A stretch of DNA of 64,000 nt from Obrimoposthia wandeli (lineage: Eukaryota), in NCBI GenBank assembly GCA_977020255.1, contig CDROCS010000122.1, forward strand, positions 434,001 through 498,000, in the 5' to 3' direction. Below the pieces are notes generated by a model. It saw only the letters and a list, made by a program, of their open reading frames with translations, did no database searches and had not been told where the DNA came from. This document shows, piece by piece, positions 474-15,263 of this stretch (within the stretch, counting starts at the first letter, position 1; each line of letters begins with the position of its first letter). The position numbers and the translations under genes were made by a program.

Positions 474-2540
474 ATGGAAAAACAACCTCAGGAAAATAAT
501 AACCAACCTCAACATTCAAAATCCCATGAGATATCAAACCAAGAAGATGATAATAACAAAACAATTATTAACACATCAAAAGCATCTGCGCCAAAGAGTA
601 CCAAAGGTAACGATAACGGTTCAGATGACATAAATAGTGATCTTTTAAATACAGTAATAAAAGGCAGGTATCGTATTGAATCACGTATTGGCCATGGTGG
701 TATGTGTGATGTTTATCGTGCAACTGATTTATTACTTGAGGCAGCTGGCGCATCAAGTCCTTTCGTCGCAATTAAAGCGCTACAAAATGAGTTCATTAAT
801 CAACCGGAAGCAGCAAAGGTATTGATAAATGAAGCTCAAACAACTCAGAGATTAAGCCACCCCAATATCATCCGTGTTTATGACTTTGGCATTGATAAAA
901 AAATATACTATTTAGTCATGGAATACCTTGATGGTGAAACCTTAGATGTTGTGATTCAACGCTCTCGCCCCCATGGTTTACCCTACAAACGTGCCATTCC
1001 GTTACTCGACCAAATGTTATCTGCATTAAAATATGCTCACCAAAACGGTATTGTTCATGCTGATTTAAAACCAAGCAACATCATGCTAACTCGAGATGGT
1101 GAAATTAAAATTTTTGATTTTGGTGTTGCTAAAAAGTTAGGTGAAAATAACGATCAATACGCTGCAATACAAGAAGAAACACTATCGGAACTCGGTGGTT
1201 ATACCCCTAATTACGCCTCAATTAATCTGTTAGAGGGTAACGTCCCTGAGATTAAGGATGATATTTTTGCATTTAGCTGCATTAGTTATGAGCTCTGTTC
1301 AAGTAAGCATCCTTTTAATCGCAAACCTGCTGATGTAGCCCAAAAGGAAAAAATTCAACCAATAAAACCAAAGCATTTAAATTCATCTAAATGGCGTATT
1401 ATTCAACAAGGGCTATCATTATCCGCGAAAGAGCGTATCGGTGATGCTGCTTTAATCAGCTCCCAATTACATCGCAAATACAAATCAACAGCCATTATGA
1501 TCACGGCTATTTTGAGCTTAAACTCTGTGGTCGGGTATGTATTGTATCAACAAAAAGAAGCCATCTTAGAGCTAACAACCGACAATCGAAATTTGCACCA
1601 ACACATTGAAGAAAGAGCAAAACTCGCAAATCTCAGTGCACGTGAAATCATTAAACAGCTCCCTGAATTATCAATTGATGCCCCCATTATTGCCAGCGGT
1701 CTACTCAAAAGTAAGCAACGTGACGTTATTGCATTATACGAACACAATATTGACCTTATCTTTAATACACGAGAGAACTATTACCCAAATTATTACGTAA
1801 TAGAAGCTGAATTAGCCGAAGTGAGTAAACTCTACCCTGACTCACATGCTATCAATGTACTGAGCACCGACATTTCAACCAGCTGGCAATCAACTATCGA
1901 TATTTTATCCAATCAGCTCAATACCACTCTAGAAAAGGCACATTATCAAGTATCTGCCGATAGTAATATCTATGAGCTATTAACTAACCTTAAAAATTTA
2001 CGTCATGATATTCAATTTAAACCGACGTCATTGGCAGAAAAGACCTACGTAACCCAGTATAAAAAAGCCGCTAACCAGCAAGATACTGAAACATTAGCAA
2101 CCTTAATTCAGGTGGGAGAAACTTTCTTCTCAACAACAAATGAACATCTCGCTCAGTTACAGCAGACAAAAATTCTACACAAAGCAATTCTTCAACTGGA
2201 TCAGTTCAAAGCAGCTAGAGAAAGCGATAACCCCGCCCCCTTCCCATATGAATCTGCAGAACTTTTATATGCTAATAAATTTGATCAATTTAACCACCAG
2301 CTTAAACGCGTGAACAGCGAATCGAAGTTAGACAAGTTACTCAAACAGGTAGATAAAACCGCTAAAGAGTTACCCGCTGATTTTTCATCACTCATTACCT
2401 TGCGCTTAGCAAGTGCTAATCAGTACCTCAATTTTTCAGAACAATGGCAAAAAAAGAAAAAGCAACGTGCTGCTCGTAATGCAATGAAAAAGGCCACGCA
2501 TCAATTTAGCTTAGTTGAAAAAGCACGTTCACAATCATAA
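474..2540 (+). CDS. Membrane-anchored Ser/Thr protein kinase, T6SS PpkA-like
   Basis: IGHGGMCDVY, VAIK, HPNIIRVYD, HADLKPSN and DFG kinase motifs; hydrophobic segment AIMITAILSLNSVVGYVLY followed by a long helical C-terminal region; divergent from the FHA gene. Confidence 0.85.
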   Translation: MEKQPQENNNQPQHSKSHEISNQEDDNNKTIINTSKASAPKSTKGNDNGSDDINSDLLNTVIKGRYRIESRIGHGGMCDVYRATDLLLEAAGASSPFVAIKALQNEFINQPEAAKVLINEAQTTQRLSHPNIIRVYDFGIDKKIYYLVMEYLDGETLDVVIQRSRPHGLPYKRAIPLLDQMLSALKYAHQNGIVHADLKPSNIMLTRDGEIKIFDFGVAKKLGENNDQYAAIQEETLSELGGYTPNYASINLLEGNVPEIKDDIFAFSCISYELCSSKHPFNRKPADVAQKEKIQPIKPKHLNSSKWRIIQQGLSLSAKERIGDAALISSQLHRKYKSTAIMITAILSLNSVVGYVLYQQKEAILELTTDNRNLHQHIEERAKLANLSAREIIKQLPELSIDAPIIASGLLKSKQRDVIALYEHNIDLIFNTRENYYPNYYVIEAELAEVSKLYPDSHAINVLSTDISTSWQSTIDILSNQLNTTLEKAHYQVSADSNIYELLTNLKNLRHDIQFKPTSLAEKTYVTQYKKAANQQDTETLATLIQVGETFFSTTNEHLAQLQQTKILHKAILQLDQFKAARESDNPAPFPYESAELLYANKFDQFNHQLKRVNSESKLDKLLKQVDKTAKELPADFSSLITLRLASANQYLNFSEQWQKKKKQRAARNAMKKATHQFSLVEKARSQS

Positions 2541-2655
2541 ATGAAAGTTGTATTACTCTTCCTCAAAAATGGGCTGGAGTAATACTTCAAGTATGCAAAG
2601 TCAACCGTTGATGATTAACAAATCTTAGTTACTCTCATTCTAGGTTGTTAGTAGT

Positions 2656-2702
2656 AAAAAAGCCCCGCATCACAGGCTCTTTCTAGTGAATACGGGGCTT
2701 TA
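2656..2702. terminator. Bidirectional intrinsic terminator
   Basis: AAAAGCCCCG...CGGGGCTTTT inverted repeat between convergent genes. Confidence 0.7.
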
Positions 2703-2723
2703 AAATAAATTGAATTGGCTAGA

Positions 2724-4241
2724 TTATTTGTTCAGTTCAATGTCTCCTGGCTTCCACGTTTTGTCGTACCAAGCTTCTTCTGGACCATAAAGCCTTAAGA
2801 GTGTAAACCAACCTTTATTGGGCACGGTTTGAATCCAGTTTGCTTCTTTACCTTTCGGTGCATTAGGGCCAAAAAATAAATCGACAGAGCCATCTGTATT
2901 TTCGATCAACTTATCGCGTTGGTTATTTTTACTCGGCAACGCTTGTTGTGTTTGCAACTCTGAACGCGTTTGCGGATCATAAGCCACGACAGACCAAAAG
3001 TTTTTAGCGGGTACATTGGCTGGAATATTCACCTTATAATTTTTCCCACCATCTAAATATTGCCCATCTTTTGATTTATCCACTAAGGCATATTGTGATC
3101 CTTTCCCGATCATCTTTAACGCCATTGCAGGCGTATTGACTGTCGCCATATAAAAGAAATACGTACGTGCATCTAAGTTGCGCCCGCCTTCGCCCTCATC
3201 TTTTAGCCACTGATAGTCTTTGCCTATAAAGGCGGTTTTCCAACGTCGATCACTGTAGATATAAGCACCATTATCACGGGGTTGGAATATGAGAGTTCTT
3301 GCCGTTGCATTGCCTATTGCGACACCATCTTTCAATAGCTTTTGCATGCGCTCATCGGGGTTGAATGGTTTGCCCTTTTGGACCCCAATGCTTGACATCA
3401 TGCCTCTTATTTCTGGCTCAAGAAACGAGACTGGCTCTTTGTCTAATACGGTTTTAAGTTCACTATAGAAATGTTCATCGTTCGCATGAACCGTATTAAA
3501 TTCTTTACCGCTGCCAGAAATAAAGGTCATTTTTGGTTGGTCGTTTATCTGCGCCAACGGATAGATTTTTAATTTATCTTTATAGGCTTTAACTGCTGCA
3601 TCTGTTTTACCGTCTTTTAAGAATCCACGGGCAATAAACCAGTTTACGTAGCTCGTAGACTGGGACACAAAATACCCTTCAGGCACTTCACTTTGATAAC
3701 CGGGCGGCAAGATTAAATATTTACCCCCTTTACCTTTATCGGGGCCAACAATGCCTAAATCTGTTACAAAGCGGAAGAATGCATCATTTACTGTGGTAGG
3801 GCCCATGCCTTCAGGCACTTCAATTACAGTAGGCCCATCTCGCTCAAGATCTAAAAATGCTGACGCATAAACAGTATCGGTGTTCCCGGTTAAAAATAGA
3901 GAGTTCGAATCCATTAGCTTATCAAACACAATTACTTGGTTAGACATCGTCGCCCCAAGAGTCGCATGACCTAACCTTAATCCCTCAATGGATGCCATCG
4001 GAATCGCATTAAGAAACACTTCCGTCGCTCGTAGCGTATCGAGGTTGTCATAAATTTTTTGACTGGTTTCAATACTTGGCATGCCATCATTAAATGTTAA
4101 TTGCCCAATGCTTGTCTCAACAGTTTGCGGCGTCATTATGCTTTGGGGAATATCAGTATTGTAATTCGGCGTTGAATAGGCGTGACCTGAAATAATCATA
4201 CTGGTCAGTATTACGACCGTTTTCAATTTTGATTTCAGCAT
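2724..4241 (-). CDS. DUF1254/DUF1214 domain exported protein
   Basis: Signal peptide; NTDTVY, GPDKGKGGKYLILPP and FWSVVAYD...LRLYGP motifs typical of this family. Confidence 0.8.
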   Translation of the reverse strand: MLKSKLKTVVILTSMIISGHAYSTPNYNTDIPQSIMTPQTVETSIGQLTFNDGMPSIETSQKIYDNLDTLRATEVFLNAIPMASIEGLRLGHATLGATMSNQVIVFDKLMDSNSLFLTGNTDTVYASAFLDLERDGPTVIEVPEGMGPTTVNDAFFRFVTDLGIVGPDKGKGGKYLILPPGYQSEVPEGYFVSQSTSYVNWFIARGFLKDGKTDAAVKAYKDKLKIYPLAQINDQPKMTFISGSGKEFNTVHANDEHFYSELKTVLDKEPVSFLEPEIRGMMSSIGVQKGKPFNPDERMQKLLKDGVAIGNATARTLIFQPRDNGAYIYSDRRWKTAFIGKDYQWLKDEGEGGRNLDARTYFFYMATVNTPAMALKMIGKGSQYALVDKSKDGQYLDGGKNYKVNIPANVPAKNFWSVVAYDPQTRSELQTQQALPSKNNQRDKLIENTDGSVDLFFGPNAPKGKEANWIQTVPNKGWFTLLRLYGPEEAWYDKTWKPGDIELNK

Positions 4242-4473
4242 AATTTTACCTTTATATTGGTTTCGATGTGGTTCATTTATACTAGGTCATAAAACATATT
4301 TGATATGCGAAAAGATCGCATTTTAATCTGTTGCACTTATTGCATTACTCCAGCACGAACCCTGATGCTGTTTATCTAAAATCTGTATGGCGTCATGAAT
4401 TAACCTTATGTCGACAGCTCCCTCTTTTTCTTATGCTATCTTTAACGAATAATAAAAACATAAGGAGATCAAA

Positions 4474-5094
4474 ATGGAATTTGATTGGGTGGAATGGTTC
4501 GGCTATCTCGCGTCGCTTGTCGTGCTTGTGTCTTTAACGATGACCTCTATCGTAAAGCTAAGGGTGATCAACTTTACAGGTTGCTTACTTTTCGCGGCTT
4601 TTGCGTACTTTATTGACTCTCTTCCCACCATGTTAATGAACCTTGGTATCGCAGGAATTAACGTTTACTTCTTATATAAGATTTATAGTGTTAAAGAACG
4701 CTTTAAGTTAATTACAGCCTCTACGGATTCAGAGTACTTTTTACATTTCATAGAAATGAATAAAAAAGACATCGAACTGCAAGTATCAAGTGACGAACTA
4801 GCATTGTCGAATACGGCTTTTTATATGCTGCGTAATAATAATATTGCGGGGGTGTTAGTGGGTTCTAAAGATGAAAATGGTGTGCTGAACGTTTTATTAG
4901 ATTATGTCACTGAAGAGTATCGTGACTTTAAAATTGGGACTTATTATTTCGAGACGAATCCTGAAGTTATAAAAAGCCGAGGTATTAACACGCTTCATGT
5001 GCGTACAAGTAATGCAGAACATCGTTCTTATCTTGAAACGGTGGGCTTTAAGCCATCTGAAGATGATAGCCAGCTGTATATAAAATTGTTGTAA
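4474..5094 (+). CDS. YgjV-like inner membrane protein with soluble GNAT-like C-terminal domain
   Basis: RBS AAGGAG; three to four TM helices (GYLASLVVLVSLTMTSIVKLRVIN), then LLDYVTEEYRDFKIG and YLETVGF segments that resemble a GNAT fold. Confidence 0.65.
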   Translation: MEFDWVEWFGYLASLVVLVSLTMTSIVKLRVINFTGCLLFAAFAYFIDSLPTMLMNLGIAGINVYFLYKIYSVKERFKLITASTDSEYFLHFIEMNKKDIELQVSSDELALSNTAFYMLRNNNIAGVLVGSKDENGVLNVLLDYVTEEYRDFKIGTYYFETNPEVIKSRGINTLHVRTSNAEHRSYLETVGFKPSEDDSQLYIKLL

Positions 5095-5106
5095 GTCACT
5101 TAGAAT

Positions 5107-5128
5107 ATCAACTTGCGACCAAGTTGAT
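5107..5128. terminator. Hairpin between convergent genes
   Basis: ATCAACTTG-CGAC-CAAGTTGAT, perfect 9-bp stem. Confidence 0.5.
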
Positions 5129-5200
5129 TTACTCATTTAATTAGTTTAACCGAAGCCTATATTAAATCTTGCTGCTTTCTCAGCAACCCTCAAGGATGAT

Positions 5201-6052
5201 CTACGTGCCGAATGGAACATAACCAACATCAAACGTGCCATTCTGAGTTAATGGATCGACAGCAACAGCAATAGATGTGTACGGTTCAAATTCAGATCCT
5301 AAATCACCGTATTCTGGTGTTGAAGCTGGGTAAACGTAAACGAAGGCATCATCGATATTGTTTGTATATTCATTACAGGCAGTACTGCTCACTGTGCCAT
5401 CGATAGCTGCCACATTTTCATTATTAACTAAGCGTACACCCCGTGGTTTTAGCTGATAACCATTGGCATTTTGTACCATACTTTTACGTAAATCGAATTC
5501 GAGCGTATAAGCTTGTGTCGCATCAGCAATAACATCGAAACCGTCTAATTTTAGCTCGCCACTGGGTACTCGAATACCTTCCTTGTTACCAGTATCGGTT
5601 TCGACGACATGGGAATACGGTGTGCCATTGCTATAAGTGCCTTTTTCTAGCACCGATAATCGCATTTGAGTATATTTACCCGATTCCATCAGTTCATCGC
5701 TTAATACTTGTTGCGAATCATTACCTTGATATGCCATCAAGTTAATCACCATAAAATCAGGGTTGCCATTGCTATCAGAAGGTATAGTCAGACCTTCTGG
5801 TACACATTCAGGCGAGCTTTGATCAGCAGCAAAAGATGTTGTGCCCCAGCTAGATTCGCCACCATTAACGTGATGAACTGAAATCTGATCAAAGGCGACA
5901 CAGACTTTACTTAGGCCATCAACAGGTGCATCAGAAAAGGCTAACGAAAAGGTACCTGTATTATTGTTGCTATCTGACGAGTCTGAACCACCACAACCAG
6001 CCAAAGCGACACTGATTACACCCTCTTTATTCAGTAAAGAATAGCGCAGCAT
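5201..6052 (-). pseudogene. DUF4382-domain lipoprotein, probably damaged at both ends
   Basis: Lipobox LAGC plus GGSDSSDS linker; SLAFSDAP, LELDFDL-like (YTLEFDLRKS) and LKPRGVRLV DUF4382 motifs; abnormal signal peptide; ends abruptly at GYVPFGT-TAG. Confidence 0.55.
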
Positions 6053-6097
6053 TCTCAGACAATCCTGACAGTAAAATTACATTCAAAATGCAACTTT

Positions 6098-6150
6098 ATC
6101 TGTTATCTGCCCCACTTACCGTTTATCTGCAATACCGCCCATTCATCGCA
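6098..6150 (+). promoter_or_regulatory. Three direct repeats at 20-bp period, candidate LytTR (AlgR-like) binding sites
   Basis: ATCTGTTATC (6098), ACCGTTTATC (6118), CCCATTCATC (6138), compared with the AlgR consensus ACCGTTCGTC. Confidence 0.55.
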
Positions 6151-6167
6151 TTGATAAGAATAGAGCC

Positions 6168-6872
6168 ATGTTCGTCAGTAACCTTTGTGCATCAACTTAT
6201 AAAAAGGACAGCAACCATGGCGCAGCATTCAGTTGGGCCATTGTTGGCATCGTATTAAGCAGTATTGTTGTTACAACCACGAATCCTGCATTGGCAACCC
6301 CACCACCAGAGACATTAGCACTGTATAACCAAGCCGCTTCGGGCGACGAAAGTAAAGTTGATGAGGCTTATCAGCTGCTAAATGACAACCTGACTCAACA
6401 AGGGGCTACCCCACTGAATTTGGTTTATCTCGGCAGTATACAAACGTTGCAAGGAAGGGATGCTTTCCTGCCATGGAACAAAATGAAGTTTACCGAAAAA
6501 GGGTTGGCAACGATTGATAAAGCGCTGAACTTATTGGGCAACCTTAATACGCCTCTCGCGCAACAAGATATCGTTCAAGGCTTACCAGAGGCTTACTTAA
6601 CCCAAGCCATGGCAGCGGTAACTTATTCTCAACTGCCCGATCTCTTTAATCACTTCGAACGTGGGTACGATCTGTTTATCGGTTTGCTGTCTGAGCCTCA
6701 ATTTGAACAACAACACTTTGCGGCAACAGCGTGGATTTATCACTACGCCATTCAAGCCTCTCTTCGCGCTAACGATCTTGAGCAAGCGACAAAATGGTTA
6801 CAAATCATGGAAAGTAAAGATCCTCAGCATGCCGACACTATCGCCGCAAAAGTGCTAATCAGTAAGGCTTAA
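6168..6872 (+). CDS. Exported helical/TPR-like hypothetical protein, first gene of the operon
   Basis: Hydrophobic N-terminal segment ending in ALA; helical pattern YLGSIQTLQGRDAFLPWNKMKFTEKGLATIDKAL. Confidence 0.7.
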   Translation: MFVSNLCASTYKKDSNHGAAFSWAIVGIVLSSIVVTTTNPALATPPPETLALYNQAASGDESKVDEAYQLLNDNLTQQGATPLNLVYLGSIQTLQGRDAFLPWNKMKFTEKGLATIDKALNLLGNLNTPLAQQDIVQGLPEAYLTQAMAAVTYSQLPDLFNHFERGYDLFIGLLSEPQFEQQHFAATAWIYHYAIQASLRANDLEQATKWLQIMESKDPQHADTIAAKVLISKA

Positions 6873-6951
6873 AATCTAGCACCTAGCACCAGAGCTTAAT
6901 CGCAATGAACATAAGCAGCGAAGTTTAAGCCAAAAGGAAGAGGGAAAAGCG

Positions 6952-7650
6952 ATGATCCAATTTAATCAAATACGAAAAACCTATCAACTAGGCAATCAAT
7001 CCGTTGCTGCTTTACAAGGCATCGATGGGCATATTCAAAAAGGTGAAATGATTGCCCTATGTGGGCCTTCAGGTTCAGGCAAAAGCACCCTACTGAATAT
7101 TCTTGGATTACTGGATATGGATTACCAAGGCGAGATCACGCTTGATGGAAACGCTTACCCAACAGAGCGATTAGCCGCAGCTAAAGTGCGTAGGCAGAAG
7201 CTTGGCTTTGTGTTTCAACGATTCAACTTAGTGCCAGTGATGACGGCATTAGAAAATGTCGCTTACCCGCTGCACCTCAATGGATTCAGTAAGCAGCAAC
7301 AAGACGAACTCGCGCTACAAATGCTAGAAAAAGTGGGACTAGGCGATTTTACTCAACATAGACCCGATAACCTTTCTGGCGGTCAACAACAGCGTGTCGC
7401 GATTGCTCGGGCATTGGTTCATAAACCAACTTTAGTTATTGCTGATGAACCGACCGCCAGCCTAGACAGTCAAAGCGCTAACGTAGTGATCGATATAATG
7501 AAGCAACTGGGGCATGAAATGGGCACCACATTTATCGTCGCAACCCATGATCCTCGAATGGCGACCCGTTGCGATAGAAGCATCGCGTTATTTGATGGAA
7601 TGCTGGCTAATCAAGCAAGTGATATAGGGGGCATGTCATGGGCAAGTTAA
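6952..7650 (+). CDS. ABC transporter ATP-binding protein, LolD/MacB family
   Basis: Walker A GPSGSGKST, FVFQRFNL, signature LSGGQQQRVAIARAL, ADEPTASLD, H-loop ATHD; strong RBS. Confidence 0.92.
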   Translation: MIQFNQIRKTYQLGNQSVAALQGIDGHIQKGEMIALCGPSGSGKSTLLNILGLLDMDYQGEITLDGNAYPTERLAAAKVRRQKLGFVFQRFNLVPVMTALENVAYPLHLNGFSKQQQDELALQMLEKVGLGDFTQHRPDNLSGGQQQRVAIARALVHKPTLVIADEPTASLDSQSANVVIDIMKQLGHEMGTTFIVATHDPRMATRCDRSIALFDGMLANQASDIGGMSWAS

Positions 7651-8990
7651 CAGCACGGTTACCGCATTTTCCGGTATCACTTCGGTTTGCTTGGCTGAAC
7701 CTATTACGCAATGGGCGACGCAGCTTGTTGTCGGTTTTAATTATCGCCATCGCGGTATTCGCCCTCACCAGTGCTGGTGGCTTTGGCTTATACACTTATG
7801 AATCGCTGAAAGAATCGACCGCAAGAGACACTGGGCACCTAACATTAAGCCAACCCGGTTACTTCACCCAAGATGAAGACATGCCGCTCAGTAATGGCTT
7901 GAATAATAGCAAAACGTTGATCAAAAAAATCATCACCGATGAGGCCATACGCGGTATTCAACCGCGTGTTTACTTCAGTGGTTTAGTCTCTAATGGCAGT
8001 AAATCGACCATATTCATGGGCACCGGTGTCAATGAGCGTGAGTTTGATATGAAAGGGCCGTTCCTCGATATCAGAGCGGGTCAAAGCCTGTCTGATGTTA
8101 CCTCTAGCCGTTATGACCCTGCCGAACCACAAGTCATGTTAGGGGTCGATTTGGCCCGTAATCTAAAAGTCGATGTAGGGGATTGGGTAACATTACTCGC
8201 CACCACGAGCGACGGGGCGCTTAACGCATTCGATTTCAATGTACGTGGCATCTATTCAACCGGTGTACCTGATCTCGATAAACGCCAGCTGTACATCCAT
8301 ATAACAAGTGCACAAGAGTTATTAGCCAGCGATAAAGTCAGCACTTTATCGGTATTCTTATTTGAAACGGCGCAAACAAATGCCGTGCACCAACGACTTT
8401 CTCAACAACTGCATCAGCTATCAAATACGTCTGAACCATTATCAAATGCATCAGAAAAATCATCAAAAACATCAAAAACATCAAAAATGTCAGATCAATT
8501 ATCTCAGCCAATTGAAATCACCCCTTGGCAAGATCGTGCATTCTTCTACACAAAAGTAAAAGATTTGTACGACCGCATCTTCGGCATCATGGGAACAGTG
8601 ATGGGCTTAGTGGTATTCGTTTCTCTATTTAACACCATGACCATGACAGTGACCGAAAGAACCCGAGAAATCGGCACCTTGTCGGCCCTTGGTAGTTACC
8701 CATCAGAAATCATTCGAGGGTTTTTATGCGAAGCAGGGTTATTAGCACTAATTGGTAGCATGCTCGGCGCGGTATCTAACGCCTTAATGTGTGTGTTGTT
8801 ACTGTTTGTCGATGTTCAAATGCCCCCTCCACCCGGCAGAAGTGAAGGCTATCCGCTGAATATCTATTTCTCATTTGAGCTGGTCGCATTAACCACTATC
8901 GGCGTGATGTTCATTTGTTTATTAGCTGCATTTTTCTCTGCGCGTAAAGGCGTAAACAAACCCATTACCGAGGCATTAATTTATGTTTAA
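7638..8990 (+). CDS. ABC permease, MacB/FtsX/LolE family
   Basis: TM1, large periplasmic domain, then three C-terminal TMs; ERTREIGTLSALG motif; overlaps the ATPase stop. Confidence 0.9.
   Translation: MGKLTARLPHFPVSLRFAWLNLLRNGRRSLLSVLIIAIAVFALTSAGGFGLYTYESLKESTARDTGHLTLSQPGYFTQDEDMPLSNGLNNSKTLIKKIITDEAIRGIQPRVYFSGLVSNGSKSTIFMGTGVNEREFDMKGPFLDIRAGQSLSDVTSSRYDPAEPQVMLGVDLARNLKVDVGDWVTLLATTSDGALNAFDFNVRGIYSTGVPDLDKRQLYIHITSAQELLASDKVSTLSVFLFETAQTNAVHQRLSQQLHQLSNTSEPLSNASEKSSKTSKTSKMSDQLSQPIEITPWQDRAFFYTKVKDLYDRIFGIMGTVMGLVVFVSLFNTMTMTVTERTREIGTLSALGSYPSEIIRGFLCEAGLLALIGSMLGAVSNALMCVLLLFVDVQMPPPPGRSEGYPLNIYFSFELVALTTIGVMFICLLAAFFSARKGVNKPITEALIYV
8461..8487 (+). repeat. In-frame 9-bp tandem repeat (CATCAAAAA)x3
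   Basis: Three exact copies encoding SKTSKTSK inside the permease periplasmic domain. Confidence 0.85.
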
Positions 8991-9819
8991 CCGAACGCAG
9001 GTTTGCACTGTTTTACTGGCGCTTACATTACCGATATCGTCGTTGGTTTTAGCTAATGAAAGCATCGATCAACTTGAAGGCATCGCACAACCTCCAAAAG
9101 CAGAGCAACCTAAAAACAGAAACCAGCAAGCCGTAACAACAATGATAACCAAAGCCGACAGCTATCGCATTCAACCCGGCGCTGCGAAAGTGGTTTCATT
9201 AGTAAAGCTTTATAAGTCAAACACGTTAGACAAAACGCGTCAGTACAATGTGTATACCCGCCCTAATCGCGAATCACTGGTGGTGTTTAAATCGGCCGTG
9301 GAAGCTGGGCAAAAAATGCTGATGATTGAAGATAATTATTGGTTATTGATGCCAAAAAGTCGTCGTCCTATTCGTATTACCCCCATGCAAAAATTACTGG
9401 GTGAAGCATCCGTTGGTGATATATCAACACTCACTTGGAGTGAAGATTATCAAGGTGAATGGGTAACATCGGCGATCATCAAAACACCTAATGGCGCAGA
9501 AGTAACAACCAACCAATTAAAATTGACCGCCAAAACCAAAGGGGCGAGTTATCAAACCATCGATCTTTGGTTAGATGCCAACAATGATTTCCCAATCAAA
9601 GCGGATCTGTATTTACGTTCAGGAAAAATGGCAAAACAAGCGTGGTTTACTCAAGGTTTGCGTGGAGGGTCAACCAGCGTTGTCGCCATGACTCTACTTG
9701 ATAAAATCCAGCCCCATAAAAAAACGGTCATTGAATATCAAGCGATCTCACAGCAAACGTTAGAAGATAAATACTACAACCCAGCGTATCTATCTCGTAA
9801 TAGTGTGTCAGAGCTATAA
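8983..9819 (+). CDS. LolA-like periplasmic protein (outer membrane lipoprotein-sorting protein family)
   Basis: Signal peptide; GQKMLMIEDNYWLLMPKSRRPIRI and DLWLDANNDFPIKADLY motifs typical of the LolA-like family. Confidence 0.8.
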   Translation: MFNRTQVCTVLLALTLPISSLVLANESIDQLEGIAQPPKAEQPKNRNQQAVTTMITKADSYRIQPGAAKVVSLVKLYKSNTLDKTRQYNVYTRPNRESLVVFKSAVEAGQKMLMIEDNYWLLMPKSRRPIRITPMQKLLGEASVGDISTLTWSEDYQGEWVTSAIIKTPNGAEVTTNQLKLTAKTKGASYQTIDLWLDANNDFPIKADLYLRSGKMAKQAWFTQGLRGGSTSVVAMTLLDKIQPHKKTVIEYQAISQQTLEDKYYNPAYLSRNSVSEL

Positions 9820-9821
9820 TC

Positions 9822-11237
9822 ATGAATAAAAATAAGGCGATTAAAGCATTCAATAACATCGGGGTACTAATGATCCTGATGTTACTGAATACGCCGTATT
9901 CAGCCGCCAGTAATAGTGATTTATCGCTACATTGGGATTGGATGATCAGTGCTGAAAGCATGCAAACAAGAAACTCGCCATTTATTCCGCCACAACCTGA
10001 TAGCCGTCAAACCATTGATGGATTATTAGAGGTGGAAGTGGGATACAAACAATGGCTAGGATTGATTTCGCTTAAAACCACAGATCTGTATTCAGAGACT
10101 CAAGGTAATTCTTCAAGTGTTCACCAGAGTTCGAACCAAAACACCTCTCTATACGATGAGCCTAACAATGATCCAAGCGCTGAATTCATTATTCGAGAGC
10201 TGTATTGGCAAGGCGGTTTTTCCTTGGCGAATGAAGCTCTCGGTGAACAGTACATTGATGTCACTCTGGGGAAAATTCGATTGGATTGGGGCGTAGGTTA
10301 CGGTTATCGCCCTCTTGATATCATTAAGCCATATCGCAGAAACCCCGTGGGAATAGTGGCTGAAGAAGGGGCTGGTGTGGTGGCATTATCTGTTTTCGAT
10401 GCCACAGGTGAATGGACGCTGCTTTACACCGATTCATCATGGACATCGCAATCACTGAATGCCCTAGAACGGCAATCTCAACAGCAAGGCATTGGCGTGC
10501 GTCGCTATAACATGCAGGGCGAGCAAGAATACCAATGGCTCGCTTACTATGACGATGTACGCCATGGGTTAATCGGTGGCAGCGTGGTGTCTGTTTTAGA
10601 TCTCGCTTGGGAATTTCATGGATCCGCCACTTACCAGCATCAAAGCCTAGGTTATGAACTACCAAGTTCGAACCAGCAACCCGTTATTTTAGGTGAGCAA
10701 GGTAACGCTTTTCAAACCCTATTGGGGTTAACGTGGGCTAATGAAGTGGGCAATAGTATTATTTTAGAATACTGGTATGACAGCCGAGCTTGGTCTTCAT
10801 CGCAATGGCAACAAGCTATCGATACCGCCACCCGCCTAAATAAAATGGCTATGCCATCGACGAATTCAACTCAGACTGGAACATCGCAAAACACAGCATT
10901 GAGTGCATCGTATGCGCAAGGTTTTCAGCTTAGCAATATTGTTCAGCATAATATGATGTTGCATTGGTCACTCAATTCAACAGCATGGACACAATGGGAT
11001 TGGAGTCGAGAAATTAATTGGATTCAACACGTAACGCCAACCTTTGATTTGCTTTACTCCCCTCAAGATAATGGGATTATCGCGACACAGTGGCTGAACT
11101 ATGAATGGATAGATACTGGGAGTGCATCTCTCGATTTAGAGCTTGCTGCACGATTTTTGACTGGGAAATCAAATTCAGCTTATGCTAACTTGCCAGATAA
11201 GCATATGATTTTGCTAAACCTGAAAGGGCGATTCTAA
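9822..11237 (+). CDS. Putative outer-membrane beta-barrel protein
   Basis: Signal peptide; alternating aromatic/hydrophobic strands; GKIRLDWGVGYGY; C-terminal LNLKGRF resembles a BAM beta-signal. Confidence 0.7.
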   Translation: MNKNKAIKAFNNIGVLMILMLLNTPYSAASNSDLSLHWDWMISAESMQTRNSPFIPPQPDSRQTIDGLLEVEVGYKQWLGLISLKTTDLYSETQGNSSSVHQSSNQNTSLYDEPNNDPSAEFIIRELYWQGGFSLANEALGEQYIDVTLGKIRLDWGVGYGYRPLDIIKPYRRNPVGIVAEEGAGVVALSVFDATGEWTLLYTDSSWTSQSLNALERQSQQQGIGVRRYNMQGEQEYQWLAYYDDVRHGLIGGSVVSVLDLAWEFHGSATYQHQSLGYELPSSNQQPVILGEQGNAFQTLLGLTWANEVGNSIILEYWYDSRAWSSSQWQQAIDTATRLNKMAMPSTNSTQTGTSQNTALSASYAQGFQLSNIVQHNMMLHWSLNSTAWTQWDWSREINWIQHVTPTFDLLYSPQDNGIIATQWLNYEWIDTGSASLDLELAARFLTGKSNSAYANLPDKHMILLNLKGRF

Positions 11238-12286
11238 TGAGTGATATTAAAATGGACGTAAAAAAAGAAACGAATTACTCATGGGGTAAATCGTTCTTAT
11301 TCACCAGTATTTTTTGTTTTATCATCGCCTTAACCACTCAAGCAGTTTGGTCTGATTCACTTTTAAAACACCTCATTATCAGCTTCGGCTTTGGCTATAG
11401 TGCTATTTTCAGTGCCAAGCTTATTAATTTTGTGTTCCCTACGATGTCACGCCAACGAGAAATTATCTGTACCCTGAGTATCTCGATGATCGTTGGTACC
11501 TTAAATGCACAATATTGGATTAATGATCTCCTTGGTGTAGATGGCTGGAACAACCTAAAGCCTGTCATATTACTGGGGCTTATCTTCACGGGTTTTTGCT
11601 TCTACTTTTTTTATTCAAAAGAACAAAAACTCATTGCAGATAAAGAGCTAGAAACCCTTAAAAGAAAACAAATAGAACAAGAGAAAGTATTGTTAGTCAG
11701 TCAATTGAAGCAACTGCAAAGTCAGATCGAACCGCATTTTTTATTCAATACGCTAGCCACAATCAGTGTGCTGATCGAAACCGACAGCAATAAAGCAAAA
11801 TTGATGTTAGAAAAACTCACAGAGTTACTGCGTGCAACCCTCAATAACACGAGGCACCAACACACCACGGTTGAGCAAGAAGTATCATTGGTTGAGGCAT
11901 ATTTGAAGATCCAACAGATACGGCTTGGGGATAGGTTAGAGTATGCCATCAATATCGACGGCATCTCATCAACTCACGTATTACCACCGCTATTAATTCA
12001 ACCGTTAATCGAAAATGCATTAACACATGGTATTGAACCAATCGCTAAGGGTGGAAAGGTCACACTCGATATAGTCAATCTTGGCGAGAGTATGCAGATC
12101 AGCGTAACGGATAACGGTGCAGGATTCAGCCCCACCCCGCATGCAACTGGGCATGGATTAGGGCTAGAAAATATTCGCCAACGCATAGACATGTTATTTG
12201 ACGGAAAAGCCAGTATATCGATAAAAGAGCTCCGTACTGGTGGCGTCGTTTCAACCTTAACCCTACCCATCGAAATGCATGATTAG
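11237..12286 (+). CDS. LytS/AlgZ-family sensor histidine kinase
   Basis: Four N-terminal TMs; LQSQIEPHFLFNTL H-box; QPLIENALTHG, DNGAG and GLGLENIRQR ATPase motifs; TAATG-coupled to the barrel gene. Confidence 0.92.
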   Translation: MSDIKMDVKKETNYSWGKSFLFTSIFCFIIALTTQAVWSDSLLKHLIISFGFGYSAIFSAKLINFVFPTMSRQREIICTLSISMIVGTLNAQYWINDLLGVDGWNNLKPVILLGLIFTGFCFYFFYSKEQKLIADKELETLKRKQIEQEKVLLVSQLKQLQSQIEPHFLFNTLATISVLIETDSNKAKLMLEKLTELLRATLNNTRHQHTTVEQEVSLVEAYLKIQQIRLGDRLEYAINIDGISSTHVLPPLLIQPLIENALTHGIEPIAKGGKVTLDIVNLGESMQISVTDNGAGFSPTPHATGHGLGLENIRQRIDMLFDGKASISIKELRTGGVVSTLTLPIEMHD

Positions 12287-12330
12287 CGTCAGAAGGTGTT
12301 AGTTAATTAAACAATCTAAGGACAGATAAG

Positions 12331-13143
12331 ATGACACAATTTGCAACCGCGATCATTGCCGATGATGAGCCACTTTTACGCCATCATTTAAATCGTTCTT
12401 TAGCCGAAACATGGCCAGAACTCGACATAGTCGCGAGTGCTGAAAACGGAAAAGAAGCATGGTTGAAAATCAATGAACATCAACCAGACGTTGTATTTCT
12501 TGATATTCGAATGCCAGAATTAGACGGTATGGCACTGGCGAATAAACTCAAAAAAATGCCTACCCCACCCTTGATTGTTTTTATTACCGCGTATGATGAA
12601 TATGCGGTAAAAGCCTTTGAACAAAGTGCGGTTGATTACTTATTAAAGCCCATTAGCGAATCACGCTTACTGACTGCCTGCACTAAATTACAGTGCCAAC
12701 TATCAATGCAGCAATCAGAACAACAGCAACCCTCAAATGCACCATCGCAGCCCGACATATCGGTATTGATCCAGAAAATTCAACAGCTATCGACACAGTC
12801 TGAGCCACAATACCTCACTTGGATAAAAGCCAGCGCGGGTGATGACATTCATTTAATCGCGATATCCGATGTGCTCTATTTTAAAGCGGAAGACAAATAT
12901 GTATCGGTGTTTAAGCGATTACCTAATAACGCCGCTCAAGAATATATTATTCGTACATCACTGAAAGAATTGCTTGCACAGCTCAATCCAGATTCATTTT
13001 GGCAAATACATCGTTCAACAGTCGTTAATGTCGCAACCATTGAAAAAGTGAAGAAAGATCTAACAGGAAGGATGTCAGTGATCATTGATGGAAAAAAGCT
13101 GCCTGTTAGCCGAACAGCACAGAGTTTATTTAAAGGGATGTAA
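12331..13143 (+). CDS. LytTR-family response regulator
   Basis: REC domain (ADDE, FLDIRMP, ITAY, KP) plus LytTR domain ([16 protein letters not shown]). Confidence 0.93.
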
Positions 13144-13909
13144 TAGTTAGTTAGATTGAACCAACAATAAACTGTTATTAATCATACCAAGTCAAAACAT
13201 ATTTATTACTAATAAACAACATCATTTAAACTTTTTGAAGAGCCTAAAATGAGTATAACAACGAAAGAACACCGCCACAGAAAGCCTAATAAGTCAGACA
13301 TTTAAACGGAGGAAGCCCACAAGGTGTATGGTTTTATCATCATCCAGATATAACGCGATAGTATCACCAACTCTCTGCTTATATTCCTATGGGGCATTCA
13401 CTGTTTTACCCATTAAACGCCGAGCAGAATTCTCCATGACGTCTCTTGATAAAACCGTAAATTAAGACGCTATTTTACATGCAACATTTCAAGTAGAAAC
13501 ATCAGTGTCCCCCAACAGAACCATCACTAAAACAGTAACAAACAACCTAGAATCAGATAATAACCATAATAATCATATGATAACAACCATAAATGGCGAC
13601 ATCAATCATACGTAAAATGTATGAATTGTCTTTATCTGACGGTTAAAAAGGAAGTCTTTTATGGGTCTGCACCTTCTCTTTATTTTATAAATCGCTTTCA
13701 CTAAAAACACTTTCTTGATAAAAAACTTAATTCATAGTGTGAATTTTGTTCCATTTTTTACCCATTCTTATTGTAAACTATATTCCTTTAACGAAATCAA
13801 TCGCACTTTTTATACCTTATAGATTCCTTTGATAAGGATATCAGTAGAATTAGGTATGACTTTTAAGAATGCCCTTTGCATTCGTCTAACGAGAGCAGGA
13901 AGCTTTATT

Positions 13910-14548
13910 ATGGGATATTTAGAGAGAATTAAGCAGTTAGCTAAAATCCAAGGAATTAGCCAAAAGCAACTTGGCGAATCTTTAGGTCTTCAGCAAGGAA
14001 CAATGAGCCGTAAATTATCGGGTAAATACGGTATTGAAGTCCGCGAACTAGAAAGAATCGCTGAGGCATTAAAGACATCTATCGGTTACCTCTTAACAGG
14101 GCAAATTGATACCGGCACTCAAGCAACAACAGCCATTACTCATGAGTCTGCACAAGGTTCAACCTGTACTTACATTCCCATTATTCACCGTAAAGATTTT
14201 GGACCTTTCATCGACGGCGAATCAGTCAATGTGGTCAGTAAACGCGTGATACCACAACACCTTGAACGTGATGATTGCTTAGGTTTATTTGTTGATAACG
14301 AAAACATTTCACAATGCGCACCTATTGGCAGCTATGCATTAGCCACCAAGCAAGCGACTTACCGCCCTAAACAACCAGTATTTGCATCGGTACGTGACAG
14401 TGAGCCTGATTTTTATCACATGACTCAATTGGCTGATGGTGTCATCTTTTCGACATCCCAACCCGATTTCCCTAACCTCTTTGTCAATAATGATGAATTT
14501 AAAGTTCACGGTTACATCATCCAATCAGATTGGGCTTACGATCGTTAA
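13910..14548 (+). CDS. XRE/CI-like transcriptional regulator with degenerate S24-like C-terminal domain
   Basis: HTH ISQKQLGESLGLQQGTMSRKLSG...LERIAEAL; AGGA RBS before ATG 13910 (the track start at 13829 is probably too long). Confidence 0.8.
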   Translation: MGYLERIKQLAKIQGISQKQLGESLGLQQGTMSRKLSGKYGIEVRELERIAEALKTSIGYLLTGQIDTGTQATTAITHESAQGSTCTYIPIIHRKDFGPFIDGESVNVVSKRVIPQHLERDDCLGLFVDNENISQCAPIGSYALATKQATYRPKQPVFASVRDSEPDFYHMTQLADGVIFSTSQPDFPNLFVNNDEFKVHGYIIQSDWAYDR

Positions 14549-14577
14549 GATCAGCTTGTAATAAATATGTGATTTAT

Positions 14578-14665
14578 ATACCAACCTATGCTTTTAACTA
14601 GAAAGAGTTTCAAAACAGGCTGCTGCGATTATTTCAACGGGTCTGATACTTGTTTAGGTTGGTAT
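14578..14665. repeat. Internally deleted copy of a dispersed inverted-repeat (MITE-like) element
   Basis: ATACCAACCTA...TAGGTTGGTAT 11-bp inverted repeat; right end matches the 37.5-kb copy at 22/26. Confidence 0.6.
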
Positions 14666-14735
14666 TCACTTTACGACTACGTAGAATAGCGAGGGTAAAA
14701 AACCGTCGATATTATTCTTTAGCTAGTGGTAAATC

Positions 14736-15263
14736 ATGTCAAAAATTATCGTTGCCTCTACCAACCCTGCAAAAATTTCTGCTGTTTCTTCAGCATTCTC
14801 ACAAGCTTTTCCTGAACAATCCTTTACTGTCGAAGGCATTAGTGTCGCCAGTGAAGTAAGAGATCAGCCTTTATGTGCAGACGAAACCTTACTCGGTGCA
14901 AGAAATCGTGTTAAGAATGCACGAAAGTTGCGTACGGATGCTGATTTTTACGTCGGACTGGAAGCGGGAATCGATGGGGATTTTACCTTTGCGTGGATGG
15001 TAATTGAAAACCACAAACAACGCGGTGAAGCACGATCGGCTTCTTTGCCTTTGCCTCCTTTTGCGCTAGACAAAATCCAACAAGGCATTGAACTGGGTGA
15101 TGTGATGGACGATATGTTTAACCAACAGAACGTTAAACAAAAAGGCGGAGCCATTGCAATGTTGACTAACCATACACTCAGTCGTAGTTCGGTCTATCAA
15201 CAAGCCCTGATTCTGGCATTAATTCCGTTTATAAATGAACAATGGTTTCCTAGCCGCGAGTGA
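14736..15263 (+). CDS. yjjX: Inosine/xanthosine triphosphatase
   Basis: VASTNPAK, SEVRDQP, GLEAGI and KQKGGAIAMLT motifs; convergent with trpR. Confidence 0.92.
   Translation: MSKIIVASTNPAKISAVSSAFSQAFPEQSFTVEGISVASEVRDQPLCADETLLGARNRVKNARKLRTDADFYVGLEAGIDGDFTFAWMVIENHKQRGEARSASLPLPPFALDKIQQGIELGDVMDDMFNQQNVKQKGGAIAMLTNHTLSRSSVYQQALILALIPFINEQWFPSRE

Follow-up and report, generated by a model that had tools for sequence, protein, structure and literature searches.

A conserved seven-gene operon of Vibrionaceae and marine relatives combines a MacB-type ABC transporter with a predicted LolA-fold carrier, a predicted outer membrane barrel and a two-component system

Results

A seven-gene operon is inherited as one unit

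The DNA analyzed here, hereafter the window, is a stretch of 64,000 nucleotides (positions 434,001 to 498,000 of contig CDROCS010000122.1) from assembly GCA_977020255.1, which is filed under Obrimoposthia wandeli. It contains a cassette of seven genes, g1 to g7, coding for an exported helical protein, the ATPase and permease of an ATP-binding cassette (ABC) transporter, a LolA-like periplasmic protein, a putative outer membrane beta-barrel, a histidine kinase and a response regulator (Table 1). The g5 product is 92 to 95% identical to proteins of Photobacterium profundum, P. indicum and P. frigidiphilum, and the DNA of the window belongs to the P. profundum group; the closest metagenomic relative is locus L087, whose barrel is 95% identical. 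The open reading frames (ORFs) bore out the tight coupling of seven genes described in an initial annotation of this DNA, with overlaps of 13 nt (g2/g3), 8 nt (g3/g4) and 1 nt (g5/g6) and a gap of 2 nt between g4 and g5. Genes g2 to g7 are intact in the window.

Table 1. Genes and regulatory features of the cassette in the window, with the median identity of each protein to those of other genera
Feature	Position	Strand	Assignment	Median identity (%)
Operator	6099-6147	+	Three direct repeats with a 20-bp period, upstream of g1	
Operator repeats	6099-6107; 6119-6127; 6139-6147	+	Window sequence: weak; CCGTTTATC; CCATTCATC	
Conserved leader	6179-6219	+	Contains TAACCTTT box (6179-6186), stem, Shine-Dalgarno sequence and start codon	
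Leader stem	6182-6186; 6203-6207	+	CCTTT pairs with AAAGG; covers Shine-Dalgarno sequence AAGGA (6204-6208)	
g1	6168-6872	+	Predicted exported tetratricopeptide repeat (TPR)-like helical protein; mature part from ~residue 44	54
g2	6952-7650	+	ABC ATPase of the LolD/MacB/DevA/FtsE group; PF00005, E = 1.5e-35	71
g3	7638-8990	+	Single MacB-type (type VII) permease; MacB_PCD, E = 6.7e-16; FtsX, E = 3e-15	70
g4	8983-9819	+	Predicted soluble periplasmic LolA-fold protein; PF17131 (LolA_like/TP_0789-like), E = 5.6e-35	69
g5	9822-11237	+	Predicted outer membrane beta-barrel; small family outside Pfam	50
g6	11237-12286	+	Membrane histidine kinase; His_kinase PF06580, E = 3.4e-26; HATPase_c, E = 3.3e-10	50
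g7	12331-13143	+	Response regulator; Response_reg, E = 1.5e-25; LytTR, E = 2.4e-24	60

Most of the initial gene assignments were upheld as well. Pfam and NCBIfam matches agreed with an ATPase of the LolD/MacB group, a single MacB-type permease and a LytTR regulator, and the AlphaFold2 (AF2) models and sequence comparisons described below agreed with an exported helical protein, a LolA-like protein and a barrel ending in Phe. Neither the seven cassette proteins nor their seven neighbors matched the HlyD/membrane fusion protein (MFP) or TolC/OEP families, as had been noted before, and a duct encoded elsewhere in the genome is possible.

To survey relatives, one genome per species was scanned with a profile of the barrel, which identified 123 relatives, and the best 80 loci were fetched. 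All 80 originated from Vibrionaceae or close marine relatives, i.e., Vibrio, Aliivibrio and Photobacterium species, Ferrimonas kyonanensis and a few broadly labelled metagenome-assembled genomes; carriers include Vibrio parahaemolyticus, V. vulnificus, V. harveyi, V. anguillarum, V. coralliilyticus and Aliivibrio fischeri. Named members of the family beyond Vibrionaceae belong to Shewanella, Aliagarivorans, Psychromonas and Ferrimonas. Phylogenetic profiling, which the initial annotation had suggested as a check, showed that 77 of the 80 species loci carry the full set of seven genes with order and orientation unchanged; the other three are cut off by the end of a contig. Such collinearity is far beyond chance. 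The flanking genes of the window (a DUF4382 gene, a helix-turn-helix [HTH] gene, trpR and slt) are common only to the three closest Photobacterium species, whereas elsewhere the flanks are mixed and unrelated between genera (LysR regulators, amylase, YebC, M16 peptidase and others). Since gene order is kept while the flanks differ, the cassette moves or persists as a unit. It is a real, uncharacterized operon, inherited as one piece.

In distant metagenomic loci the families of the cassette still occur together, also where the gene order is rearranged. ATPase, permease, PF17131 protein, barrel, kinase and regulator were present in L082; permease, PF17131 protein and barrel, followed by convergent regulator and kinase genes, in L083 and L084. 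The cassette is permuted in L086, where barrel, kinase and regulator are followed by a g1 homologue (hhalign probability 98%, E = 9e-14), ATPase and permease. On the 5.3-kb contig L081, a barrel/kinase/regulator trio (1759-4678) is flanked by a Fur gene on one side and a ParDE pair on the other, and the contig has no ABC or LolA-like gene.

Throughout the carriers, the cassette-specific proteins are annotated as hypothetical. The orthologous operon of V. parahaemolyticus is VPA0015-VPA0021. For three of its genes (VPA0015, VPA0018 and VPA0021), the sole mention encountered was in a study of infected macrophages that used expression data and STRING (PMC10469919). In open-access papers and preprints, we found neither a functional study nor an assigned substrate of the Vibrionaceae operon, as the initial annotation had supposed, and nothing relevant on PF17131, on TP0789 or on LolA-like proteins with FtsX.

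A phased operator precedes the operon, whose kinase resembles AlgZ

In 78 promoters of g1, the core CC[AG]TT[CT] recurs as a direct repeat, two to four times per promoter, always on the coding strand and 80 to 130 nt upstream of the start codon. Altogether 185 sites were counted, versus 29 in shuffled sequences, and spacings of exactly 20 bp between neighboring repeats occurred 90 times, versus 0.12 in shuffles. The extended consensus reads A-CC-R-TT-Y-R-Y-Y-S-C. Its promoter-proximal copy is ACC(A/G)TTCGTCGCA in many species; it reads ACCGTTCGTCGCA in L004, L025, L049 and L067, and ACCATTCGTCGCA in many others. Both strands of the 1.63 Mb of fetched loci contained 100 paired sites, 94 of them within g1 promoters and 6 elsewhere. 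Three distant loci (L082, L085 and L086) have the phased motif in front of the cassette as well; in L086 it stands both before the barrel-first unit and before the g1-first unit.

One further paired site in the window (4472-4497, minus strand) was considered as a clue to a wider regulon or to the cargo and was rejected: it does not have the extended consensus, 0.2 such sites are expected per window, and it is probably due to chance. It overlaps the start codon of a plus-strand ORF for a membrane protein (4474-5094), with a DUF1254/DUF1214 gene (2724-4241, minus strand) 230 nt downstream of it.

Because LytTR regulators bind direct repeats and the operator is confined to this operon, positive autoregulation by g7 is the best reading of these sequences and a well-supported one, with the repeats as the presumed binding array of g7. 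The self-regulation proposed at the outset was thereby strengthened. A scan for sigma-70 promoters before g1 gave no convincing candidate, which fits an activator-dependent promoter. Autoregulation suits a substrate encountered under certain conditions only. Among NCBIfam models, g7 scored best with BtsR and LytR, in either case below the cut-off.

The kinase, on the other hand, had been taken for LytS, and this part of the initial annotation did not hold. The g6 product has neither a 5TM-LYT nor a GAF sensor, but a short membrane N-terminus of ~130 residues, in which a hydropathy scan detected two strong membrane helices within the first 125 residues. Two weaker helices, recognized by eye in the translation between the strong ones, likely bring the number to four, as in AlgZ (PMC4064291). 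Judged by its sequence, g6 thus has the layout of AlgZ/FimS and not of LytS. The two-component system is similar to AlgZ(FimS)/AlgR of Pseudomonas aeruginosa in its short membrane-embedded N-terminus joined to a PF06580 core, in its LytTR regulator and in its operator, whose core matches the published core of the AlgR binding site, CCGTTCGTC (PMC4064291). It differs in its targets, and its sites form a tight array of 20-bp period before a single operon that encodes the system itself. The resemblance is one of layout and site.

The start of g1 is altered in the window

The AF2 model of g1, derived from alignment A3, was all-alpha and TPR-like, with ten helices (predicted local distance difference test [pLDDT], 87.5), and matched only generic TPR folds in the PDB. 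Orthologues carry type I signal peptides, and the protein is not a lipoprotein. In the window, however, 9 bp and 34 bp (43 bp) are deleted just after the conserved start (6217-6260), as judged against P. frigidiphilum, P. indicum and P. profundum (L001-L003) and L087, all four of which are free of these deletions. The conserved ATG (6217-6219) is out of frame and runs into a stop after 13 codons, and only an atypical ATG further upstream, at 6168, keeps the long ORF open. The stretch around this ATG is leader or promoter DNA in relatives: it lacks coding conservation in Vibrio species, and in P. profundum it opens only a short upstream ORF. Since the conserved start is out of frame and the ORF is open only from 6168, g1 in this strain is either re-initiated from an unusual start or not made.

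The leader itself is conserved. A box, TTAAYCT...CATCAA, is kept in the 60 nt before g1 in L004-L080 and in the window (6179-6216). In several clades the 3' arm of a hairpin covers the Shine-Dalgarno sequence, while the sequence of the stem varies by clade (CCUUUCAA/UUGAAAGG in the V. splendidus group; a stem of 14 to 15 bp in Aliivibrio). A hairpin arm placed over the Shine-Dalgarno sequence, with a stem that differs from clade to clade, suggests translational control. Because an Rfam search of window positions 5000-14800 returned just one chance sub-threshold match to a small nucleolar RNA, the leader does not represent a known RNA family.

The g5 product is predicted to be an 18-strand-class barrel

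Based on an alignment of 35 orthologues (A1), AF2 predicted a large beta-barrel for g5 (pLDDT, 84; predicted template modeling [TM] score, 0.81) with helical inserts at residues 326-342 and 356-369. The protein ends in G-R-F, and G[RK]F is found in 80 of 80 orthologues; a C-terminal Phe is a typical barrel signal. The top Foldseek matches of the model were the 18-strand barrels AlgE, OprD/Occ channels and chitoporin (E values down to 3e-12; TM score, ~0.48), which points to an outer membrane beta-barrel of the 18-strand class. The family is small: a profile search among 1.84 billion representative proteins retrieved 267 members at E <=1e-3. Neither g5 nor g1 belongs to a Pfam or NCBIfam family, and sequence searches of both against the PDB gave nothing useful.

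AlgE as the top Foldseek match, together with the TPR-like g1 and an operator that matches the AlgR core, raised the question of an exopolysaccharide port, with g5 acting as AlgE, g1 as the TPR protein AlgK and g6/g7 as AlgZ/AlgR. However, neither the cassette nor its flanks contained a synthase, glycosyltransferase, polymer-modifying or cyclic di-GMP receptor gene, g1 is no lipoprotein, and the match to AlgE (TM score, ~0.48; 10% identity) is common to all 18-strand barrels including DUF1302. Given the generic barrel match and the missing polymer synthesis genes, this alginate-like reading is highly improbable and was rejected.

A link to DUF1302 (PF06980) itself is plausible but not established. 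Three of the 35 orthologues touch the same profile positions (80-175 of 541, i.e., ~100 residues), the best of them scoring 21.7 bits (E = 1.2e-4; cut-off, 23.2 bits); the window protein and ten distant family members gave no match. The similarity is local and below threshold. DUF1302 has been described as an 18-strand barrel with AlgE and Occ proteins as its top Foldseek matches, and it is predicted to bind the LolA-like protein DUF1329 (interface predicted TM score, 0.84) (PMC13499233). In Castellaniella defragrans, the inducible AmeABCD system comprises a DUF1302 barrel, a DUF1329 protein of the LolA superfamily, a BNR protein and an HAE3 pump of the resistance-nodulation-division (RND) type, and its deletion lowers monoterpene tolerance and increases Nile Red accumulation, phenotypes that support a role in exporting hydrophobic compounds (PMC6394551). 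Related clusters of the DUF1302/DUF1329/BNR/RND type show cofitness in Shewanella and Pseudomonas, and export of an envelope component has been proposed for them (bioRxiv 10.1101/072470; 10.1101/2020.07.04.188060).

The structural neighbors of g5 also speak for traffic in the opposite direction, as Occ/OprD and chitoporin are uptake channels. The barrel might then admit a hydrophobic nutrient or signal, which g4 would bind and either present to the kinase or feed into catabolism, with the ABC transporter recycling g4 or gating the barrel. Barrel, kinase and regulator form the most constant trio, and barrel and kinase are translationally coupled, the start of g6 overlapping the g5 stop codon by 1 nt in 65 of 79 loci. 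Yet no type VII (MacB/FtsX-fold) ABC protein is known to import, and no catabolic genes are linked to the cassette. Tween 20 and fatty-ester phenotypes of DUF1302/DUF1329 mutants (bioRxiv 10.1101/2020.07.04.188060) and the induction of LolA-like/MMPL and porin proteins on long-chain alkanes in Thalassolituus (PMC6304351) are on the side of uptake or sensing, which we nevertheless hold to be improbable.

The carrier and the ABC motor are related to, but distinct from, Lol proteins

The g4 product matched PDB entry 3buu, a protein of the LolA superfamily, at 6.8e-19. A type I signal peptide was present in 71 of 71 orthologues and a lipobox in none (0/71), and g4 is accordingly predicted to be a soluble periplasmic carrier with a LolA fold. 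Its family, PF17131, is distinct both from the LolA family proper and from DUF1329 (PF07044). The protein is conserved as strongly as the permease (median identities of 69% and 70%), which is consistent with a conserved partnership or cargo.

For g2, the best NCBIfam matches were LolD, MacB and DevA, each below its cut-off. Scores against the LolD equivalog models were 225.2 bits for TIGR02211 (cut-off, 307.75) and 210.5 bits for NF008639 (cut-off, 360), and g3 scored 88.4 bits against the LolC/LolE equivalog TIGR02212 (cut-off, 362). There is one permease gene, not a LolC and LolE pair. Sequence matches of g3 in the PDB (YtrF, MacB, LolF, LolE and LolC) were all similarly remote (1e-11 to 1e-6), those to LolF, LolE and LolC (~1e-7) being weaker than those to YtrF and MacB. 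A hydropathy scan of g3 detected five hydrophobic stretches, two of which (358-376 and 377-395) abut and were read as one helix; this would give four helices, as in the FtsX fold, in addition to a periplasmic core domain of ~230 residues, and the permease presumably works as a homodimer. By these comparisons, the ABC parts are of a generic MacB type and not orthologues of LolCDE. The periplasmic domain of g3 is joined to the second membrane helix by a Ser/Thr/Lys-rich low-complexity linker (residues ~262-290; window ~8420-8510). The protein has 450 amino acids in the window and 444, six fewer, in L087.

With the FtsX/MacB fold of g3 and a stress-type two-component system of its own, the cassette could also serve mechanotransduction without transport: an FtsEX-like ABC protein would reshape g4 and g1, which would activate an enzyme or open the barrel in an envelope-stress response. 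LolA-fold proteins can be allosteric activators, as GerS is reported to be for CwlD. But no conserved enzyme gene lies in or beside the cassette, and in AmeABCD a LolA-fold protein paired with a barrel is associated with export; we give mechanotransduction little credence.

A second Lol pathway would be the other obvious function, in which a particular class of lipoproteins would be extracted by g2/g3 and ferried by g4, with g1 and g5 inserting them or flipping them to the surface. It is suggested by the LolA-superfamily fold of g4, by the presence of LolC, LolE and LolF among the PDB matches of g3 and by the combination of a TPR protein with a barrel, for which TPR-plus-barrel Slam translocons would provide a parallel. 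The same idea has been proposed in silico for BBJ23-29 of Borrelia (PMC13078400). These points are countered by the LolD and LolCE equivalog scores, which lie far below the cut-offs, and by g3 being no nearer to Lol proteins than to YtrF or MacB.

The neighborhood of the cassette bears on the same question. A DUF4382 gene (window 5201-6052, minus strand), divergent from g1, encodes an N-terminal lipobox, L-A-G-C, and its product is probably a lipoprotein, so that a lipoprotein gene does adjoin the cassette in the window. It occurs there in the closest Photobacterium loci only, and no lipoprotein neighbor is conserved. With its position beside the cassette restricted to the P. profundum group (L001-L003 and L087), the DUF4382 gene does not encode a general cargo. 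Taken together, we consider a second Lol pathway unlikely.

No cargo, biosynthetic, catabolic or enzyme gene was found to be conserved beside the cassette in the flanks of the fetched loci. In 22 of 77 loci (e.g., L013:13370-16141), g7 is followed after ~200 bp by a same-strand gene for an M16 (pitrilysin-type) peptidase of 924 residues. In the window, the region 3' of the cassette (13144-14548) is AT rich (G+C, 0.34 to 0.38), and a gene for a Cro/C1-type HTH protein with a TTG start (13829-14548) follows the AT-rich stretch.

Discussion

In outline, the cassette would work like several known envelope systems. At the level of fold and superfamily, its initial description as Lol-like stands, and like LolCDE-LolA-LolB it joins a type VII ABC extractor to a soluble carrier of the LolA superfamily. 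The closer relationship that the term implies does not: scores against the LolD and LolC/E equivalog models miss the cut-offs by far, so that this is not a LolCDE system, and g4 falls outside the LolA family proper. Further differences are the single permease gene, the inducible rather than housekeeping character of the cassette and a barrel in place of LolB; no second LolA/LolB-fold gene and no lipoprotein, and hence no LolB-type receptor, was found in the cassette. With MacAB-TolC, PvdRT-OpmQ, DevCBA-HgdD and AatPABCD it shares the MacB_PCD and FtsX permease fold and the ATPase subfamily. In contrast to these pumps, the ATPase is not fused to the permease, and a soluble carrier and a porin-like barrel take the place of a continuous tunnel. 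As there is no MFP or TolC-like duct in the cassette, it is not a MacAB-TolC pump.

Two further systems offer functional analogies. In BceAB-BceRS of Firmicutes, an FtsX-family ABC transporter is coupled to a kinase without a sensory domain, and transporter load is the signal; it differs by its ten-helix permease, its OmpR-type regulator and the lack of an outer membrane. In the Mla pathway, an ABC complex likewise cooperates with a soluble lipid carrier in the periplasm and a barrel complex of the outer membrane, but with MCE/MlaC folds and OmpC/F. A seven-gene cluster of Borrelia, BBJ23-BBJ29, has a MacB-like ABC transporter, a LolA-like protein and an outer membrane barrel; there, the barrel is of the Omp85 (BamA/TamA-like) type, chaperone-like proteins are encoded, a two-component system is missing, and the interpretation is in silico only (PMC13078400).

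The nearest system with wet-lab data is AmeABCD. Both comprise an inner membrane pump, a periplasmic protein of the LolA superfamily and a barrel of the 18-strand class of their own, dispense with TolC and are inducible, and g5 shares its Foldseek neighbors, AlgE and Occ channels, with DUF1302 barrels (PMC13499233). The motor of the cassette, however, is a MacB-type ABC transporter instead of an HAE3 RND pump, its carrier belongs to PF17131 and not to DUF1329, and its barrel reaches DUF1302 only below threshold. In addition, the cassette includes a TPR-like protein and an AlgZR-like two-component system, and neither a BNR nor an RND gene was found in it or its flanks. The cassette is thus not a bona fide DUF1302/DUF1329/RND cluster. 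By analogy, AmeABCD points to efflux of small hydrophobic compounds rather than to lipoprotein sorting.

Gene content, folds, co-inheritance and operator emerge from the analysis itself; from them, we infer transport, its direction, the hand-over steps and the nature of the cargo as follows. With a probability of roughly 0.55, the cassette would constitute an inducible, self-amplifying route, free of MFP and TolC, for export or efflux of a hydrophobic or amphipathic molecule, in which the kinase senses a membrane-borne signal or transporter load. The homodimeric MacB-type transporter g2/g3 would lift the substrate from the outer leaflet of the inner membrane or from the periplasm by ATP-driven motion of its periplasmic domains and load it into the cavity of g4. 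From there, the substrate would be handed to the DUF1302-/AlgE-resembling barrel g5, which would insert it in the outer membrane or release it outside, while periplasmic g1 might act as an adaptor or scaffold. Signaling through g6/g7 would switch on the whole operon, itself included, via the three 20-bp-phased repeats before g1; g6 is almost devoid of a periplasmic part and would probably sense a membrane-borne signal or the load of the transporter itself. Concerning the cargo, a small hydrophobic compound, be it a xenobiotic or a lipid-like product of the cell itself, seems to us more likely than a lipoprotein. In favor of this route are the domains and folds of the parts, their co-inheritance even in rearranged distant loci, the invariably soluble g4, the C-terminal Phe of the barrel, the cassette-specific operator and the precedent of AmeABCD, together with the predicted binding of DUF1329 by DUF1302.

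Several observations weigh against this export route. The g1 gene is seemingly dispensable or damaged in the genome studied here, and no g1 homologue was detected in L082. On the short contigs L081 and L085, barrel, kinase and regulator appear without a complete adjacent pair of ABC and LolA-like genes in the sequenced stretch, and the ABC genes may be dispensable for the function or spread of the barrel and two-component system, as the L081 contig suggests. Type VII ABC proteins also include members that do not transport, e.g., FtsEX. The similarity of g5 to DUF1302 is confined to ~100 residues below the Pfam threshold, and the cassette is accompanied by no conserved cargo or biosynthetic gene in the flanks. 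Nonetheless, the initial proposal of an envelope-spanning export system passed three comparisons on which it had been staked: a Lol fold and a barrel were predicted, the genes co-occur, and no substrate assigned to an orthologous operon was found.

A more far-reaching, tentative reading, which we regard as possible but doubtful, is that the cassette represents a distinct class of ABC-driven exporters spanning the envelope. In such a class, a MacB-type motor would deliver a hydrophobic substrate to a free LolA-fold shuttle and this to a dedicated DUF1302-like barrel with a TPR adaptor, the shuttle being an alternative to the MFP/TolC tunnel, and an AlgZR-like kinase would read transporter load, a form of flux sensing in a Gram-negative envelope.

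If the export route proposed here holds, MacB-type motors can cross the envelope without adaptor or TolC, using a LolA-fold carrier and a private barrel, and the poorly understood PF17131 and DUF1302-like families would be tied to a testable function. The operator with its three repeats 20 bp apart provides an immediate reporter for the inducer, and hence for the likely substrate. Such an inducer or substrate could explain the tolerance of marine vibrios to hydrophobic compounds of host or environmental origin.

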